Shown piece after piece: positions 51,364 to 62,869 of a stretch of DNA of 64,000 nt. The DNA is taken from contig OZ037772.1 in the NCBI GenBank assembly GCA_964035545.1, forward strand, positions 8,363,150-8,427,149, in the 5' to 3' direction. Made by a program: the position numbers and the translations under genes. The notes under the pieces are model-generated. The model was not told the DNA's origin, did not search any database, and was given only the letters and a program-made list of their open reading frames with translations. The stretch comes from Bugula neritina. Lineage: Eukaryota > Animalia > Bryozoa. Position 1 is the first letter of the stretch; every line of letters starts with the position of its first letter.

Positions 51364-54300
51364 CTATGCACATCCTTCATAGTATGGAGGAACTGGGTTC
51401 TGGGGTGTTGGGTCCCAATCGGCACTCAGACGGTAGTACAATGTGTCTTCCAATCTGAATGGTGCAAGCGGTTTCACAGGAGTTGTATCTGGAGTGGCGG
51501 GGCAAATTTGCTGTTGGGGTTGTCTACTGGGTAGATGGGGACTAGCACCTTGTCCATAGGAGCTGGAAGGCTGCTGTCTAACCGTGGCTTGATGAATGGG
51601 ACCGGAGTATGGTGGTGTATAACTTTGGTGCAATTTAGGTGTTGAAGAACCGATACCTTGTAGAGGTGATGAAAGGCCCTGTTGCTGAGGGTATGCATAT
51701 TGCCCAGATATCTGTTGTTGTTGAGGGTATCTAGTCTGAGGTACCGCTATTGCCTGAGATTGGGGATAGAATGTAGGCGCGGCCTTCTGGAGATCTGGCT
51801 TGTCAAATCTGTATCCATCTTTTTTCATTTCACGCCGGTTACCTGGTTGGTGTGGTACCGGAGGGTCGTAAGAATACTGCTGCTGTTGAACAGATCCACT
51901 TGGTTCCTGACTATAGCTTGGACCCGGAGCGCCACCAGCTGCTCCCTCAACACTACCAGACCATTGCTGTGTCCAGTCAGGAGTACCACAAACTGATGCT
52001 CCTCCAGAACCAGTTCCAGCTGCTGCTGCTACAGGCTGGCTCGCAGGATCAACTACATCATCATCCCTACAAATTTTGCTGGAGCCCAATGCTGCCTTTG
52101 ATTGGCCAAACCCACTGGGTCCTGCAGGTACGGGGAATGTAGAAGCGTCAAAAACTTGGTCTGATATGATTTGTTGGACATTACCGGCACAAGCTCTTTG
52201 AGATTCAAGGGTTTTATCAGCTTTTCCTTGTTGTTTTTTAATGGCTTTTGCCTCACTAATTTTTTGTTCTTTGTGACATTCAATCAACTGCTTTAGCTCA
52301 GAACAATCGGAATTCAATAATTTGGCTTTTTCTAGAATATTCTTGCCAATATCGTTCTTTTTGCTGTCAAAAGCAGAAATAGCTTTTTTCAGTTCACTAA
52401 TTTGAAAATCGGTAAAATCTTTGACCTCAGCCACTCTGTAAGAGTCGGGAATCGTGTTGGCGTAGCTCTCCTTGTTTCTTTCAAGATAAGCTACGTCTCT
52501 TTTCTTACAGTACAATGGGGAATAAGCATCTTTAAGCTCCGCCTCTACTGGGCGTGTCTCTCTGTTCAAGTCCTTCAGTTCAATTGGATGTGCCACCAAA
52601 GAAAGGGCTGTTACATCTTCAGAGGTTGCGTCTATTTCATCTATCTCTTCCAGCTTTAAATCCTCTTCCAATTTAGTTATTGTCATTATGTCAAGCTGCA
52701 AAATTGTTTGAAAACAACTTCATAATTTATTATCTAAAGCTATATATAGCGCAAATTCAACAAATGTTGGAGCACACCTATGGTAACATTGATATTTATC
52801 TTTAAAAGGCTAATAAAAAAAACGGTTTTGTGTTTCCCATTGCTGTGTACATGACTCATTTTATGATAGTGTAATGTTTTTTAACGTTCTTTAGCTATAA
52901 ATTAGGCACAAAATGTTTAATAAAATCCTATCAAGAAACAAGCTATATATTTCAAAACAATTTCTGCAACAGCTTTTAAAATAGTGAGATTTATTAGTTT
53001 AACCTGTCAATTTTGGGAAAAATGATACAAGATGTTCACTATTAGATTTATGAAAAATAGAAAATGTTATCAAATTAGCCCAGATTTATGAAAACAGTAT
53101 CTCTTAGCAGCACCAGCTACAATAATATGCAACTCACAAATTACAAGTAAGTCAGTGCAAAAGAGTAAGCAACACTAACAGAGTTTGAGATTCTTGAGTT
53201 TATGGTTAGGAGTAGGGGTTGGTGCTTTTAATCCCCATCTTTAAACTCAATAATCCCTAACTACTGCACTCGGCTAACCCCAGCTGAGAGCTGCATATAC
53301 ACAACTATGAGTAAAGAGGAACCGACCAATTTTAAAGAACAAAGGAGTCATTCACTTACTGCGAGGACTTTCACATTTGTCGTATCTTGCTTGCCATTAG
53401 CTTGGAATTCATTAACAAACTCTGAAGTTATGGACTCCTGTAAAACAATTGTACTCAATAAAGTTTGCATATAATTTTATGTATAGCCTATATAATTAGA
53501 AGACATAATTTACTATAAAATAACATATGATTTAATACAATATTTTATGTAATACCATAATAGAACACAATATAATATATCTTGACTTTTCTACTGTCCT
53601 AATGTATGCTTCAGTTTTAACTATTAACATTAACATTATATTATCTAATATTCAAAGAAAAGAATATAAGGATAAACTCTCAGATAAACAAAAATTCTAC
53701 CTATATTTTTCTGCTTAAAAATATTTTTGTTTGAGATAAGCATAATACAAGTTTGATTCATTTTTTTGTTTATTTTGTAAATTTATTAAATAAAAATACT
53801 GTAAAAGCACTTTAAAGAATAATTGCAACTAAAAAAGATAATAGCGCATTGGTTGAATGTTTTGTCTAAACACCAAAGGTTGGGGCACTGTGCCAACCAC
53901 CACACTATAAAAGAAAACAGGGACCACAGTCTTTGTACCGGGAACTATAGCGTTATTAGAGAAACTTGATGGATGAGCTGCCAGATTTGTAGAAAAACAA
54001 GGACTTGATTGCATAACCGGCAAATATTGCTGAAAAGTTGTGCCTATTGACATGTTAAATTTCTCAGCAGATTGTACAGATGCAAAATCTTTATCTAGTT
54101 GAAAATTGTCTGATGCCAGAAGCTTTCTTTCGCTGCCAATAGGTAACTGAGTGCAAGTAGTCACTGGTGGAGCTGGAAGAAAAGGAATCGGTTCTACATC
54201 TGCAACCAATGGTGAATGAACTATTTTCTCTAATCTTGAAAAGAATCCATCACAATTGCTGGAAATACTTTTGTCGTCATTGCTTTCAATTTCTGATTGA

Positions 54301-57166
54301 GTTAACTCTGTAGATTGAGCATTATTGGTATTAAAATTGTAGAATATTGCATTCTGTGCTTCTTTTGGTGATTTTTTATTTTCAAGCTTTAGCTTACACG
54401 TAAATGTATCATCTTTGAGATAGTCTTTAGAACCTTTCCAATGTTTATTAGTCTTTGTTTGTTGCTTGTAACCAGCTTCTAATTTTAGTTTTTTATCTTT
54501 ATTTTTATTTTTTTTTAAGTTTTTTAATATTCTTCTTGTCGAAGGCACCAGGCCCTTACGTTTAGATGTCAAACTCCCAAGTTGCTGGTGAGATTTGGCT
54601 GGGCTAATCGGGGAGAAGCGTTCCGTTAGATTCTCCAAGTAACCATGCAGCCGCATCTAGGAGAAGATAAATCTTGGTATAGTTTGCTGCTCATCTTATA
54701 ATAAGTACTCTTGAGTGTCAGAGTATAGAAAGTGATGTAGCTTGAGGAAGATTTGAACAAACTCTGCTTTCATTACTTTTGAGTCGTTCACCAGTGTTTT
54801 CAAACCCAAAGTCATGACAGATAGTAACATTTACACAAAATAGAACCTCTGTAATTTAATATATGTAGCCTTATTGCAAACAAGATTACTTTTACAAAAA
54901 CATAAACCATTGGGTAATCTAATATAAATATGGCCACATATTTAAAATTTTTGGCATTTTAATTTTATTAGAGTAAAAATATTTTTGGCATAAAACATAA
55001 ATTATATTTTATCAAAATTTATTTAATAAATGCTCATTGGCAAAATAAGAGCTTTACTAAAAACACTTAGTCCTAACTACAGTACTTTGTTGAAAATGCT
55101 TTCAGAAACCAGGCTTTAGTGTTCATGATTTAATCGAACACTTACCAAAGGCTTGCTGTCCAGCAGGTCAGACATTTTGTCATCAATCAACTCCACACAC
55201 CAATAAACTAGACTGAAGGCTTTGTGGTGTCCAAGAGCTGTGTTAGCCTTTAACAGCTCATCACACTCTGCCAGCAAATTCTCAGTGAATGCCAAACACT
55301 AAATAGTAAACACAACAGGTCATATTTTGCAAAGATAGCATGATGGCTTTTGTCATAAAAGCTACTAAAGTTTAGCTTGACACTTAGAAAAAAACCACTT
55401 GATTTGTGTTGACTAATTTTTGCATTAAAAATCTATGCTTGTAGTGAGTCTACCCAGAAGTTCCTGCATGTGGTGTAAGAATTAGCAGACCTGTTTGCTA
55501 GCAGGGTGTCCAGGGTTTGAATCTCAGTGGGACAAAAGCTTTATATGTTTAAATTTTAGAGAAAAAGCTTTTGCAAGAAGCAAAGTAGTTAACTAGGTAG
55601 AACATTTAGCAATCTGTATAGCTGGTAAATGTACTGATGAGTTTACCTAGTGGCGTGTGGTGCAATGGTTAGCATATTCGCTTGCAAGCCAGAGGTCTTG
55701 GGCTTGAATCCCAGTAAGAACAAACTTTTTTTTAGAGTAAAATAATGAAAAATGATTTTGCCTCTCACTGGGAATCGAAACCGAGTCCTCTGGTTTGCAA
55801 GCAAGTGTGCTACTATTACACCCGAGGGCCACTGGGTAAACTTATAACTACATTCCACCCACTTGTTTAAGCTCCACTGGCCTGCCTACAACTCCACCAG
55901 TCTTCAGGCTTCCCTAGCCACTCAACTTTTTCGGAGTACTATTACACTTTACTAAAAGCTGAAATAACTTGAAAAAGAATTTTTCTCCCACTGGGAATTG
56001 AACCCTAGTCCTCTGGATTGCAAGCAAGTGTGCTACCATTACACCACGGGAGCTACTGGGTAAACACATTATTACAATTAAGTATATTTCAAAACTAACC
56101 AAAAGGAAATGCTTATACTCTACATCCGGGCCAGTTAGAAGCCAGCTCCCTATAAACTGGTTGTAATACTTTTGACCTACGGAGCTCATAACCAAACGGT
56201 CGGCAAGCATATCGCTAATTGTCTCCCGGAATCTAGATCTCATCTCGTTTATCTCCTTTAAGTTCTTCTCCGCAGAAAATAATACTGAAATAAGGTTTAA
56301 GACCAATTTTAAAGCGAAATAAAGTTTCAAGTTGATCTCAATATTGAGATTTTGATACATTGTCGTAATTTATTAAGCAATTTGAGGAAATAATAATGTA
56401 TTGGCAACTATCGAAAAGCATTTTATTCATATTTTTGTACTTCTTGATTTAATTCATACTATTTTTATTTCTTGAGATCATTTAAATCTAAAAACTAAGA
56501 GAGCAGCTGTGGTTAGGGTTAAAGCATTTGCCTAGTAAACACGAAGTCATGGGTTCAAGCCCATACAAAATCCATTGGTGATGTTAGGAAGAGCATCCAG
56601 TCATAATTGCTCCTGTACCTCATCTGATTAATTGTCCTTAGCTCGATTAAACAGAAACCCTTTTCATCAGGGGTTTCTCACAGGGATGGTGACTATAATA
56701 AACTTGCGTGAGTTATTTTAATGTGAAACCTAAGTTTACTATATATAGTATACAATTTTCTACCTATAAAATTTAGTGTATAAATTATTGCTCATCAAGA
56801 TGTTGGCAATTGATAAAATACAGTGCGAATAGCATTAAACAGTTGGCATATAATTTATCTTGACAAGTTGAAAATTTAAATACGTTATTTTTAGAGTGCT
56901 TGAAATTCTTACCCAGTCTTTCTAGATACGTGTCTTCTGTGCTCCAAGTAGCCAGAGCCGAAGGGTTACTGGAGAAGAGCTGGGAGGACTGACTCCTCAC
57001 TTTTGTTTGGTCATCATTCAAAATGGCTGATATTCTACAGAAGAATTTTGCAATAACAAGTTTGCTTTTAAGTTTTGTTAAAATTTTTTTTTGCAAAGTT
57101 AGCCAATAAAAAATACTTAATAATTTGGCTGCATGTATTAAATATTGCATGTTGTACATTGCGTGC

Positions 57167-57232
<66 letters not shown>

Positions 57233-57628
57233 GTGTGCGTGTGTGTGTGTGTGTGTGTGTAGTCCTATATAAGACTGCACAACATTATAAACATTTCATT
57301 CTTTCATGTCCGAAAAATCTAATAACGTATTATTTAGTTATATTTTTACAGACTTTTAAACACCTAAACTAGGTTTCTATAATTTTTTTAACTACCCATA
57401 ACACTACCAATTCTGTGTAGCAAATTTGATTGGTTTAGTTTTTTAAAATCTATTTTAATACTTAATTATTATAGCTGAGAAACAATCACTGCGTTGTATT
57501 TGTTTAATTTAATTTTTTACTCACCGTTTCCTGAAAAACCTGACAAGCCGTAACCGTCTGTCGGATGTGGTTGGAGCTTCAGAAACGGAGAGATTGCTTA
57601 TGTCAGAGTGTTGGTCTGCTTCCGCCAT
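51364..57628 (-). CDS. Uncharacterised 657-aa protein: helical N-terminal domain (possible divergent Bcl-2 fold), charged coiled coil, Q/P/S-rich tail
   Basis: Phase-consistent exons 57628-57525 (AAACATGG start), 57034-56913, 56284-56100, 55298-55146, 53437-53360, 52695-51364; open throughout. The fold assignment is inference. Confidence 0.75.
53829..54656 (-). CDS. Probable alternative terminal exon (275 codons, Lys-rich then S/P-rich) of the gene above, or a nested ORF
   Basis: Starts directly after a strong acceptor (TTTATCTTCTCCTAG|ATG) in phase 0, compatible with the donor at 55145; an 828-nt ORF in very AT-rich DNA. Confidence 0.55.
   Translation of the reverse strand: MRLHGYLENLTERFSPISPAKSHQQLGSLTSKRKGLVPSTRRILKNLKKNKNKDKKLKLEAGYKQQTKTNKHWKGSKDYLKDDTFTCKLKLENKKSPKEAQNAIFYNFNTNNAQSTELTQSEIESNDDKSISSNCDGFFSRLEKIVHSPLVADVEPIPFLPAPPVTTCTQLPIGSERKLLASDNFQLDKDFASVQSAEKFNMSIGTTFQQYLPVMQSSPCFSTNLAAHPSSFSNNAIVPGTKTVVPVFFYSVVVGTVPQPLVFRQNIQPMRYYLF
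55453..56061. mobile_element. Cluster of four family-2 tRNA-like SINEs (55453-55545 +, 55645-55735 +, 55750-55837 -, 55975-56061 -)
   Basis: Each begins CC(C/T)AG.(A/G)G.., has A/B-box-like motifs and a CTTGCAA-like loop, and ends T-rich. Confidence 0.75.
56499..56719 (+). mobile_element. tRNA-derived SINE family 1
   Basis: Shared head, core and tail. Confidence 0.88.
57168..57260. repeat. (GT)n microsatellite
   Basis: Direct observation. Confidence 0.97.
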
Positions 57629-57770
57629 GTTTAGGGCAAGTCCGGCTTGCTGAAAGTCAGTTTAACAATGCACCACTTGTAGGTGAAGCAGCAAGTCTTA
57701 TTGTGCGGGATTTAGCATTTCAGAAATGCATCAACTATTTGCGATTACATCACTGGATTGTGAAACAAGT
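57629..57770. promoter_or_regulatory. Probable compact bidirectional promoter / first-exon region of the head-to-head gene pair
   Basis: Locally GC-richer island. The minus-strand ATG is at 57628 and a plus-strand donor (CAA|GTAACA) at 57769 could end a 5' UTR exon of the plus gene. Confidence 0.4.
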
Positions 57771-58477
57771 AACAATCAATTTTTGTTATTTTATATAATG
57801 TAAAATTGTTTTTCTAGAATGCATGCATGCATGGCTGAAAACAATTTCATAAATAAGAAATAATATTCTGATTTAAGCAATATTTATTTCTTGCCTACTA
57901 TAATATTATATATAGAGTTGAAACTAAACATAAAAATTTAAATACATGAAATAGTTTTTAACTTTAATTGACAGTCCCTTACTGTAATAGGTTAATTAAT
58001 CATGTTTTTAAGACTATACATATATGTTGCATCAACAATTATACCCATTTATGCATGGTAAAATATTTTATTTCTGAAATTTTTATTTTCAAATGATCAA
58101 ACCAATAATTTTGGAGTTGACCAAAATCTAATGACTGAACAAGCAAATAGTTTTCTTTATGGAAACAAGTATATTTGAATTGAAATTTAGAATTTATTAC
58201 TTATTATAAATTAGAAAATAATTATATTATAAGTGCTTTCGCACTGATCTAAATGATATATATAACAGCTGGACAATATAAAGTATAAAAACTTATATGA
58301 CATAATAAGATGTTAAAATAGTATTATACTGATTAGGTTGGAAAAAAAATTGAGAAATAGACAACTGCATTGAGATATATATATATATTATATTGCTTAA
58401 GTTGATAATTATGGAAAATTAATAGGCAAATTCATATATCATGGTGTATTTTAAAATATAGTAAGGTAGTGTATTGA

Positions 58478-58691
58478 AAGCTCCTGTAGTCTAGGGATTA
58501 GAGTGCCATGGCTCTGTAAACACAAGATAAGTGGTTTGAATCCTGTATAGGCCATTGAAGATGCGAAGAAAAGCATTCAGTGATGATTGCCTTCTGCTGC
58601 TATAGAATATAGTATTTTGTCTGCTGAAAAAAAATCATTTATTTCATCAGGGGTTCTCACAAAGATGGCGACCATAAACCCATGTGGGTTT
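58478..58691 (+). mobile_element. tRNA-derived SINE family 1 (old)
   Basis: Diverged but colinear head, core and tail. Confidence 0.7.
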
Positions 58692-59806
58692 ACAGTGATA
58701 TAGTATATTATGTAACGTTTAATTAATTCATTTTGTTATATCATATACTAAAATGTTGAATAATGATATATATGCTTGTATCCACTTGGCCAATTCCAAA
58801 CAAAGCTGGTCATATACTCAAGTTAGAAAGCAGTTCAAATAGAGTATAATATAGTAAAACACTCAACCTGTTCAACAAAAGCCTAATATTTTGCCTACTT
58901 GCTAAAGTGCTGTAAAAGGCTAACACTAAACAGGGGCTTGTGTAGAGCTATATTTTGAAAAGCTTTACAGCTTTTGCTGTTTTCATTTGCAACAAACAGT
59001 ACTAACTAATAAGGAGAGAGAAGCCTAATCAACTGTACAACAGGTAAAGTGTTTTCAACAGGTAGTTGTATAACTATACAGCATATAGGCTTTACTAATT
59101 TTAACCAATATATTAAATGGCAAACTAAAAAATATGCAATGTTTTTGTCTATTAAAAACTAAAAAGTTATGATTGCAGTTTCAAAAAGTTCAAATATTTC
59201 AAAGAGTAAAACGTTAAGCTACAGAATTATATAATGTTTCGAAACTTAGTTACTTAATTCAAATTAAAAGTGGAAGGAAAAGCAACTCCTTGATTAGCTG
59301 GTTGTTAGCCTATATAGACTGAGATAGACAAGTGACATGTTTAAAACTTGCTTATACCAGGTTGTCTTTAATTGTGTGAAGTACATGTAGAAACTCCATT
59401 GAGAAAACTTTTTTGAACTTAAAAAGTTATACCATATTTTTTCCTCATATATCACAATGTCTAATAATTATTATATAGTATATATTATATAACTATGCAT
59501 ATTACTTATAAGTATTTAAACTAGTATTAATATACTTCACTAATGAGTATGTATAGTGAGCTGAATATGGTTCATGATTGGACAACTCCAATAATTTTTA
59601 AATCATTAGGATAATTTAGTATAAGAGAACAGTATTTATAAGTATATTTAAATTTAAATGAATTTTTGTTATATTACAATGCTAACTTGAGCTCTGAATT
59701 TTTGAAATAAATGTTTGAAATAATTTAAGAAATTTACTGAAAATATTTTCAAGTCTAAACTTTTTATTGCAGTTTACACAGAAATCTGCTGTTTGCTGAT
59801 GAAAGC

Positions 59807-62800
59807 ATGGCTAATTGTAAAGGCTCAGTATCCCTGAATCATATGATGTGTATGCCATATTACAATATCCTGGCAGCTCACTTGCAAAAGAGGTAGGAAA
59901 ATCTGCTACTCAACAAGAAATATCTGATTGCCTAAAGTTTTATATACTGAAAGTTAGGCATATAAAGTTAAAGAAAATCCAATTTTAATTCATAAAACAG
60001 ATTTAATGTACATATTTTGCTTAATTGAAGATTATATAGTCATTTTATTTTATTAAGAAAACCCTGATTGTTTTATTAAATAATTTATTATACTTTTAGT
60101 GGTATAAATTGATTTAATTAACTATAATAAATTATTATTTTTATGGCATGCCAATAACTGATCATTATGAAAATTATTTTCTAATATTAACTGAATAAGC
60201 TACTATATGAATTTTTACTTCCACCAAGGGCAAATAAATTCAAATTGCCTTAAATTAATAAATAAATCATATATATTGTTATGCACATCTTAGCGTGCTA
60301 TGGTATATGTCATATTATATAATGTATAGTATATTATCTTCTATGATATATCATGCTATTCAAATGTATAAATTTTATGACTTTAAAAAAGCTTATTAAC
60401 AAAATGTTTATGACAAAATAGATTCTCATCAACAATTAGATTGAGACAATAAAATTTTATAGCCATACCTCTCAACTTCTCAGTTTAAGTTTTCAGTTCT
60501 CACGCAGGTAATATTTATTAATATAGATGCTAACACTAAACTACTTAAAAACCTAAATAATTCATAGATAAGAATTATATACAATAGATTTCTTGCTATA
60601 GTTTCAGGGAGAAGAACAACAGAGATGTGGAAAGAATATTGCTCCAAGCTTTACCTACTGACTATATAAACACTGCAGCTTTGTTTGACCTTCATCTGTC
60701 AGGTATGTACTGCTACACCAAATTTGTATTTATCTCCTAGGATTTGAACTCTTAGGGGCAGCCATGACCTAGGGGTTATAACACCGGCTTAGGTCAGTAG
60801 TTTAAATCTTAGTACATGCCATTGATGATGTTGGAAGGAGCATCTAATCACATAATTGCTCCTGTGTCCCTTATGAATAAGTCCTTCTTAGCCTGCTTTG
60901 AAGAAAACCCTTTCTATCCGAGGTTTTTCACAAAGATGTAAACTTGAGTAAGATTTTGGTTTGGACTGTTAGGAGGTAGCTGTGAAGTGTGGAGTTATGT
61001 TTCCATGTAATATAAATAGCCATTGAGGAACGCTGCAGACAAGATTATGATATCTTTTATAAATAAATAACATATTTTAGTTCACTATAACAAAGCTAGC
61101 TTTATCTTTTATCTCATGACATATTTTAATTCATTTTAATAATATGTAAAGTAACTATTCTAATAACTATTTATTAGTGTAATACCTTTTCCAGCTACCC
61201 GTGCACTAGAGAAAAACTCTAACAAGCGAAAGAAGATTTGCCAGCACCAACAGAAAGCTATCGTGGCAATCACAGACTTGAATGCCGAGCCAACTGATGC
61301 CAAGGCAGCGTTCAAACACATACTCACACTCTTAGTTTCTCCGGCAGAATGCCAGAGCTGGGGCTCCGTTGGACTGGTAGGCATTTTATATCTAGAAAAA
61401 AAAAGCCTAAAAAGTTTGAAAGTTTATACTGCGTGCGTCATTCTTTTTAAGATGGACTGTAGGAAAGATTCATGTTAAGTGGAGATGCGTTTTTAAACTT
61501 TAAATGAGTTCTGTTCATTTATTTTGGGTAGTTTTACTAAAATATGTTCATGATATATATGCAGAAAAAAAAATAAGAGTCTGAAGTAGCTTTAGAATTT
61601 TTTTTCATTACTATGGCTATATATAAAAGATTTGATAAGTCTTAAAGCTAATTCATAAAAGTAGAGAAGAATTTGAAATTAAACTGTGGTTTAAGAAATT
61701 ATTAATTAAAAATTTTTTTGTCAAAATAAGTTTATCCTAAATTAACATAAGCATGTCTTATACTTAATTAATATATAAAGCCATATATGTTCGATTATAA
61801 AAAAATCTCCTTTAGAGATTGCCAAGTCTTGTTTTCTTACTGAAACACATTTGTTATAACACGTGTAAATTTCAAGCATTTTAGCTAGGAGTTCAGAATT
61901 TGTGTATTCAAATTGCAAGAAATGAAACAATACTTTGAAAGCTTTTATTGAAATTAGATCAAATTATTAATTATTGTTAGTTGCTATGGTAACTATAACA
62001 TATTCAAAGTGATCTCTATTGTACAGGTCGTAGGGTTGTTAACAGACCAAGTGCACAGACTAGCAGAGCTCTATGTTCAGTACGAACCTACTGTGTTCAT
62101 GCATAGGATACTGGAGGTGGTTTCATACACACTAGAGTTCCTTGATGAGCACCTCTCCTGCTTTATTGAGCAGTCTGGTGGATTTGAGGTATCAACTTAG
62201 GGAATTCCCTTCATGTAACCTTGGAGATTCCCTTAATGTGACTTTGGGGATTCCCTTTATGTGAATTTGGGGATTCCCTTCATGTAACTCCGTGGCCTAA
62301 GGATTAATAGAGCGTTTGTTTAGTAAACGCAAAGTTGTGGGCTTGAATTTTGGCAAAGGCCATTGGTGATTTTAGGAAGAGCATCCAGTCATAATTACTC
62401 CTGTTCTCTATATGAATGAATCTTTAGCCTGATTTAACAAAAAACCCTTTCTATTTAGGGGTTTTTCACAGGGATAGTGATTATAAACTTGTATGAGTTT
62501 CTGTTTAAAAGAAAACGTATCTCTAGCTATTATGAATATATTTTTTTTCAAGTATGTTTGAATCAGAATAAATTTAGAAACTATTAAAATTATTGTACTG
62601 TTATATACCTGTTTATAATAATAACCTACAAATCACACACACTTAGTTATTCTAGCCATGAATAGCATTTTAGTGATCTATTTATATGTATTGCTATTTT
62701 GGTATGACGTATTTTATAGCGCATCATTATACTATGTCATAGCATTTCATATATCGAAACGCAGTCATATATTTAGGGCATAATATAGTAGGCTTGCAAT

Positions 62801-62869
62801 TTGTAATTCTTAAATGTTTTTTTTTTGTAGAGCCGTTCAAATCAAGCCTGCAACAATCAAGAGACTTGA
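59807..62869 (+). CDS. Divergent Bcl-2 family protein (~189 aa, no C-terminal TM seen)
   Basis: Exons 59807(ATG; acceptor 59773)-59892, 60602-60702, 61195-61376, 62027-62188, 62831-62869, phase-consistent. BH1-like AAFKHILTLLVSPAECQSWGSVGLVVGLL and BH2-like LEFLDEHLSCFIEQSGGFE (compare Bcl-xL VNWGRIV and YLNDHLEPWIQENGGWD). Confidence 0.75.
60755..60950 (+). mobile_element. tRNA-derived SINE family 1 (diverged)
   Basis: GGGGCAGCCATG head, shared core and tail. Confidence 0.75.
62199..62289. repeat. Short minisatellite, ~22-23-bp unit GGGGATTCCCTTYATGTRAYT
   Basis: About four tandem copies. Confidence 0.8.
62290..62500 (+). mobile_element. tRNA-derived SINE family 1
   Basis: Shared head, core and tail. 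Confidence 0.82.

Follow-up and report, generated by a model that had tools for sequence, protein, structure and literature searches.

The question raised by this locus is whether two divergently transcribed genes of the bryozoan Bugula neritina are both members of the Bcl-2 family, and whether they form a pair. The window analysed is a 64,000-nucleotide (nt) stretch of AT-rich animal DNA on contig OZ037772.1, and coordinates are window positions unless a chromosome is given. One gene lies on the plus strand between 59807 and 62869; the other starts at 57628 and is read from the minus strand, away from the first. Both probably fall within a greatly expanded and highly divergent Bcl-2 branch specific to this lineage, placed by sequence in one subfamily with four further cassettes of the same genome (G1 to G4), in which the minus gene would have lost both signature motifs, BH1 and BH2. 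The locus had been singled out in an earlier reading of the DNA (hereafter the original prediction), whose two gene models, with their exon sizes and intron phases of 2,1,0,0, were reproduced exactly, with GT..AG introns throughout.

The plus-strand gene

The plus gene was rebuilt from the sequence as five coding exons, each junction being GT..AG. Exon 1 (59807..59892, 86 nt) opens with the ATG at 59807 and closes with a GT donor in phase 2. Exon 2 (60602..60702, 101 nt, AG..GT) is entered in phase 2 and left in phase 1, and was the only strong candidate recovered by a splice-site scan. Exon 3 (61195..61376, 182 nt) ends five codons past the Trp of a BH1-like Ser-Trp-Gly-Ser, exon 4 (62027..62188, 162 nt) carries the central helix through a BH2-like Gly-Gly-Phe, and the last exon (62831..62869, 39 nt) adds 12 codons and a TGA without a hydrophobic anchor. 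The product is 189 amino acids (aa) long, has intron phases 2,1,0,0, and ends 12 residues past Gly-Gly-Phe. An acceptor at 59771-59772, just before the ATG, implies a non-coding leader exon further upstream.

The family signatures are incomplete in this protein. Its Ser-Trp-Gly-Ser is a partial match to the BH1 signature Asn-Trp-Gly-Arg, and Gly-Gly-Phe with one further residue stands where the BH2 signature has Gly-Gly-Trp at the exon end, which is absent. The membrane anchor of the Bcl-2 family is C-terminal and typical, not universal; downstream of the plus gene, no convincing anchor exon was found in the next 7 kb, which held low-complexity frames only.

Pfam was queried exon by exon, with the domain split over four exons, and the gathering cut-off of the Bcl-2 model (PF00452) is 31.4 bits. 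Plus exon 4 gave the only match among the exons, to Bcl-2 at the BH2 positions (E 0.1, 13.6 bits). Its single match in the PDB was Bax, with which it aligned convincingly over the Bax helix and BH2; the canonical members considered were Bcl-2, Bax, Bak and Bok (PF00452; PDB 2o2f, 5w63). A hidden Markov model (HMM) built from 18 BH2 exons of the same genome ranked plus exon 4 first among the 1020 open frames of the window (E 1e-5). Compared with exon 4 of G1 to G4, it was aligned by hhalign at 92% (E 6e-7), and it was the first genome-wide match of the G1-G4 exon-4 profile outside those four cassettes. Exon 3 was aligned in register with G1-G4 exon 3 (hhalign P 0.006), and exons 3 and 4 joined scored 33.9 bits against the G1-G4 model and 15.8 bits against a model of eight canonical members. 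On this homology the plus gene clearly belongs to the Bcl-2 family, as had been predicted from its BH1- and BH2-like segments, though as a divergent, short and anchorless member.

In architecture the product is comparable to BCL2L15 (Bfk) and BCL2L14 (Bcl-G), which are short and soluble, end soon after BH2 and have no anchor. The likeness is one of architecture only, the nearest relatives of the plus gene being bryozoan paralogues.

Bcl-2-like genes elsewhere in the genome

A whole-genome scan with the Pfam Bcl-2 model gave at least 29 exon matches, of which three passed the cut-off, and local models added more; in all, at least ~25 BH2-type exons were recovered from this genome. Together with the two window genes, this number points to an unusually large and divergent repertoire of the cell-death family in a bryozoan, and nothing on bryozoan Bcl-2 genes or apoptosis machinery was found in the searched literature. 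Sites of the expansion include C8 (the chromosome of the window) at 4.78, 5.10, 9.87-9.94 and 10.79 Mb, C3 at 19.93 Mb and C5 at 17.54 Mb. In most members only the BH2 exon can be recognised, and stops occur in some (L006, L010, L019). One Bcl-2-like gene lies ~11 kb past the window end, on the minus strand at C8:8437715-8437909 (L029:566-760) and convergent with the plus gene; its BH2 exon scored 26 bits with the local family model. At C6:15567576-15567713 onward (L004), a Bcl-2-like exon is interrupted, without loss of frame, by a long tandem array of a Tyr/Ile-rich unit of 10 residues, and the BH2 part comes after it; the array is probably intronic and open by chance.

The multi-exon Bcl-2-like genes of this genome have three introns in common: one in phase 1 before the exon that ends with BH1, one in phase 0 five codons past the BH1 Trp, and one in phase 0 right after Gly-Gly-Trp. 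A core split in this way, by one intron after BH1 and another after BH2, recalls the multi-exon type of Bax, Bak and Bok. All three introns are present in the plus gene, and also in the minus gene if the Tyr of its Glu-Tyr-Lys-His is taken as the BH1 aromatic residue. The original prediction had read the shared phases as a signature of the pair; they do occur in both genes, but since they are common across the family they mark the family and not these two genes, and a 185-nt exon 3 likewise belongs to the subfamily.

G1 and G2 form a same-strand tandem on C8 at 10.79 Mb (L035), and G3 and G4 form another on a different chromosome, C5 at 17.54 Mb (L036), with a spacing of only 1.5-2.5 kb in each tandem. 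Exon 3 is 185 nt long in G1 to G4 and in the minus gene, 182 nt in the plus gene, and 155-167 nt in other members; exon 4 of G1 to G4 measures 147-156 nt. Scored with a model built on eight other members, two of which pass the Pfam cut-off, the four cassettes reached 18-29 bits, and their exon-4 profile found human proteins in the PDB, the top 60 matches shown all being Bcl-2, Bcl-xL or Bcl-w (best E 1e-4). By these profile matches, G1 to G4 are true Bcl-2 family members.

With the two window genes, G1 to G4 share the intron phases, a loop past the central helix that is longer than in canonical members, and a Trp-Leu motif before BH1. They keep Trp-x-Arg and Gly-Gly/Asp-Trp, whereas the minus gene has neither, and they stand as same-strand tandems whereas the window genes stand head to head. 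Downstream of G1 to G4, a search for an anchor exon gave low-complexity frames only. A splice-site scan for exon 2 recovered nothing in G1 to G4, nor did it recover minus exon 2, and it is therefore uninformative. A similarity search among the upstream exons of G1 to G4, the plus gene and the minus gene returned repeats only, and neither window gene was picked out by a model built on the exon-3-like exons of the whole family. Plus exon 4, minus exon 4 and the two downstream minus-strand exons described below (a 275-codon exon, and the helical part of the last exon) are single copy, no own-genome paralogues of them having been found.

The minus-strand domain

On the minus strand, coding exons 1 (57525..57628, 104 nt, ATG at 57628), 2 (56913..57034, 122 nt), 3 (56100..56284, 185 nt) and 4 (55146..55298, 153 nt) encode 188 aa with phases 2,1,0,0, and all junctions are AG..GT. 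Exon 3 ends five codons past the Tyr of Glu-Tyr-Lys-His, which occupies the BH1 position in place of Asn-Trp-Gly-Arg. Exon 4 spans the central helix through a degenerate BH2 position, at which Ser-Lys-Pro-Leu replaces Gly-Gly-Trp. Compared with canonical members, neither window gene has a recognisable BH3, BH4 or clear anchor, and the minus gene lacks BH1 and BH2 as well.

Minus exon 4 was aligned by hhalign with exon 4 of G1 to G4 over 46 of 51 columns (71%, E 3.7e-5), and minus exon 3 with its G1-G4 counterpart in the register that the exon borders predict (P 0.003). When the G1-G4 exon models were run over the 1020 open frames of the window, plus and minus exon 4 ranked first and second, and plus and minus exon 3 ranked first and sixth. 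Exons 3 and 4 of the minus gene, joined, scored 22.3 bits against the G1-G4 HMM (E 5e-9 as one test) at profile positions 6-102, in an end-to-end alignment in which exon border falls on exon border. None of 2000 exon-wise shuffles reached this score (maximum 9.2 bits), and the reversed sequence scored -0.9. Against a model of all 12 family genes the same exons scored 15.3 bits (E 1e-6, 0 of 2000 shuffles as high), and leave-one-out family models gave 12.8-24.4 bits. The by-eye register of the original prediction, in which minus residues had been laid on the plus template, was found independently by HMMER and hhalign: the BH1 aromatic residue stands five residues before the intron and the helix preceding BH2 is aligned.

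By profile comparison, the BH1-to-BH2 stretch of Bcl-2-like proteins has its homologue in minus exons 3 and 4, where neither signature survives. The first ~190 aa are supported as a cryptic, highly diverged Bcl-2 family homologue, which agrees with the reading proposed earlier and now runs through G1 to G4 and the 12-gene model. That this region is instead an unrelated helical domain, matched by chance or by helix periodicity, is very improbable. Identities to family members of only 12-21%, the missing BH1 and BH2 and the blank Pfam, PDB and Atlas searches would suit such a domain, but it is opposed by both of the E-values given above, each with its shuffle control and the first with a negative reversed sequence, and by two consecutive exons that match their counterparts with coinciding borders and the same 185-nt length.

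Contigs of a related species (L030, L031, L045, L013) covered minus exons 2 to 4 and the exons downstream, and did not reach exon 1. Identity was 96, 89 and 94-96% in exons 2, 3 and 4, respectively, against 85-91% in introns; for exon 2 the intron value was 85%, and this exon contained one 3-nt indel with its splice sites kept. Exonic indels were multiples of three and intronic ones were not, and every minus-gene splice site examined was preserved. The ratio of nonsynonymous to synonymous substitution rates (dN/dS) was 0.09 over exons 2-4, with 0.11 for exon 3 and 0.02 for exon 4. The minus domain is under strong purifying selection. The loss of signature motifs would also be seen in a decaying copy without function, a reading that is hardly credible given the open frames, the conserved splice sites, the confinement to introns of indels that are not multiples of three and the low dN/dS. 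When HMMER was run exhaustively with minus exon 3 as query, the sole match was its counterpart in a relative. One minus exon query matched a designed protein, and this match was ignored.

Several points weigh against placing both genes in the G1-G4 branch. The minus exons were blank in the exon-wise Pfam, PDB and Atlas searches; for Pfam and the PDB this is because BH1 (Trp-Gly-Arg) and BH2 (Gly-Gly-Trp) are both lost. Against canonical members alone the minus gene scored just 5.9 bits, so its link to Bcl-2 is transitive, through the G1-G4 intermediates. Its likeness to G1 to G4 was spotted by eye before modelling, a concern that is answered by the 12-gene model, which involved no picking and still scores the gene. 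Exons 1 and 2 have no detectable similarity to anything, and the same holds for the start of exon 3. Direct similarity between the plus and minus genes is weak: exon 4 against exon 4 gave p 0.002 by shuffling and P 0.028 by hhalign, and the whole proteins gave z<1, which is not significant, so that of the predicted resemblance between the two a weak exon-4 signal was recovered and a whole-protein one was not. For the plus gene no relative's sequence was found: its exons 3 and 4 gave no metagenome locus, and a word search with exon 4 gave no match, so its model is based on splice sites, open frames and homology. The bundle fold of both spliced domains would follow from homology. A search for RNA evidence on junctions, starts and ends found a single sequencing run, which proved to be DNA of the same species; its contigs span introns and contain no splice joints.

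With these points counted, membership of both genes in the divergent branch remains the favoured reading. A gene that standard searches would call hypothetical is placed in the Bcl-2 family through own-genome paralogues and exon architecture, and the family gains a member that lacks BH1 and BH2 yet is tightly selected; the interest is moderate and of a specialist kind. Poxvirus N1 and A52 are the known parallel, viral proteins with Bcl-2-type folds that sequence searches cannot recognise and that are known from crystal structures. The minus protein is likewise motif-less, but it can be traced by way of intermediate paralogues and is known here from sequence.

Origin of the pair and the 3' end of the minus gene

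The start codons at 57628 and 59807 are separated by a spacer of 2.18 kb (57629..59806), described here by its sequence. The original prediction had both genes start from a common region near 57.6 kb. The head-to-head orientation stands, but a common start would need the putative non-coding plus exon; the spacer may hold a shared promoter, and a plus leader exon may lie near 57.64-57.77 kb.

A tree was built on ~105 alignable, very divergent columns. It separated the plus gene, the minus gene and G1 to G4 from the canonical genes with support of 95/93, and it neither supported nor rejected a sisterhood of the plus and minus genes (log-likelihood difference 0.05; approximately unbiased (AU) test, p 0.43). 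Of the proposed inverted duplication, the common subclade is thus upheld and the sister pair left undecided. With the genes only 2.2 kb apart, an inverted duplication in place would be the simplest origin, and descent of the pair by local duplication and inversion is somewhat favoured. A less probable course is that both are family members descended separately from G-type genes and brought head to head by rearrangement. This would fit the score of the minus gene against G1 to G4, which falls from 22.3 to 19.6 bits once the plus gene joins the model, its identity of 21% to G2 and 13% to the plus gene, its retention of the 185-nt exon 3 of G1 to G4 where the plus gene has 182 nt, and the many other members on the chromosome, including the one ~11 kb past the window end. 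On the other side, local duplication is the simplest account of two members of a small subclade at a distance of 2.2 kb, their sisterhood is not rejected by the tree, and ~105 very divergent columns are too few to decide.

Downstream of minus exon 4, which ends in phase 0, the acceptor at 54657/54656 opens a 275-codon frame (53832..54656, minus strand) in phase with it. An ATG follows directly after an in-frame TAG, the frame ends at 53832, and AATAAA occurs 44 and 57 nt past its stop. In the relative the frame is open with one 12-nt indel, the stop is conserved, and the final 40 residues, which are hydrophobic, are nearly identical; dN/dS was 0.28. The AlphaFold model was of low confidence, predicted as disordered with no fold. 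The hydrophobic end (mean Kyte-Doolittle ~1.6) is short, contains proline and was not helical in that model. The frame has no usable phase-0 donor; a single good donor occurs 97 nt in, and its phase is 1. A 97-nt short form of the fifth exon was rejected on that account, its phase being unfit for the next exon and the rest of the frame being conserved as coding.

Two further minus-strand exons follow. A candidate 78-nt exon (53360..53437) is open only in phase 0 and has splice sites that are kept in the relative (92% identity). A 443-codon exon (51364..52695) starts in phase 0 at 52695, with an in-frame ATG at codon 4 and conserved splice sites. It was predicted, again at low AlphaFold confidence, to contain two long helices (~residues 40-180) and then a Pro/Gln/Tyr-rich disordered tail. 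Its helical part (52120-52560, ~residues 48-190) hardly differs between the two species, in contrast to its variable flanks, and had no Pfam match. Word searches with the 275-codon exon and with this last exon returned the relative's genomic contigs only.

The original prediction combined one old inverted duplication, one bidirectional promoter at 57.6 kb and a single minus-strand fusion of a Bcl-2-like domain to a coiled coil and a Pro/Gln-rich tail, and in this full form it is unlikely. The genes are indeed adjacent, head to head and in one subclade. Phase 0 is common to exon 4, the 78-nt exon and the 443-codon exon, and a transcript spliced through them in that order would remain in frame; the relative preserves the splice sites of the 78-nt exon, which has no in-frame ATG and would, if coding, depend on a phase-0 donor further upstream, for instance the one of exon 4. 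Long helices and then disorder, the expected order, are also seen in the last exon. Such a transcript must, however, skip the conserved, in-phase 275-codon frame with its conserved stop and the AATAAA beyond, the one good donor that the frame does contain has phase 1, which is incompatible with the next exon, and the last exon has an ATG of its own at codon 4. The separation of the start codons and the AU result for the sister pair count against the remainder of the scheme.

The fusion claim is thus opposed by the exon that follows exon 4, which ends in a conserved stop and offers no usable in-phase donor. By these frames and splice sites, termination of the minus gene with the 275-codon exon has about an even chance. 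Alternative 3' ends, one of them skipping that exon, are a lesser possibility, and a single long fusion, which could arise only by such skipping, is rather doubtful. The 443-codon exon would serve the minus gene as an alternative 3' end or else form a gene of its own. BCL2L13 (Bcl-rambo) has a Bcl-2-type domain followed by a long, poorly structured last-exon extension with a hydrophobic end. The minus gene would be like it in architecture only, as the bryozoan hydrophobic end is short, contains proline and is not predicted to be helical.

If membership in the Bcl-2 branch is accepted, both proteins would form the Bcl-2 helical bundle. The plus protein may act as a soluble regulator that still offers a groove for BH3-like helices. 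The minus domain would most likely continue into the long disordered terminal exon with its conserved hydrophobic end, and the protein may serve as a non-canonical adaptor or modulator, with altered groove-lining motifs and carried on a disordered arm, and not as a pore former. A fuller scheme is improbable as a whole: a two-gene unit under one bidirectional promoter, in which a soluble Bcl-2-like protein would pair with a motif-less adaptor that has alternative 3' exons (the disordered arm and hydrophobic end, or the coiled coil and Pro/Gln/Tyr-rich tail), and in which cell death would be controlled by this pairing, in a colonial animal whose zooids are cyclically destroyed and rebuilt.

Copies of a short interspersed repeat fill introns in both genes (55500-56080, 56500-56700, 58450-58700, 60740-60950, 62290-62480 and elsewhere). 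No tRNA was called in the intronic repeats by ARAGORN. The repeat copies had very high depth in the DNA run, and the relative's contigs matched many positions of the window. Minus intron 1 also contains a long (CA)n/(TG)n microsatellite at 57165-57262.

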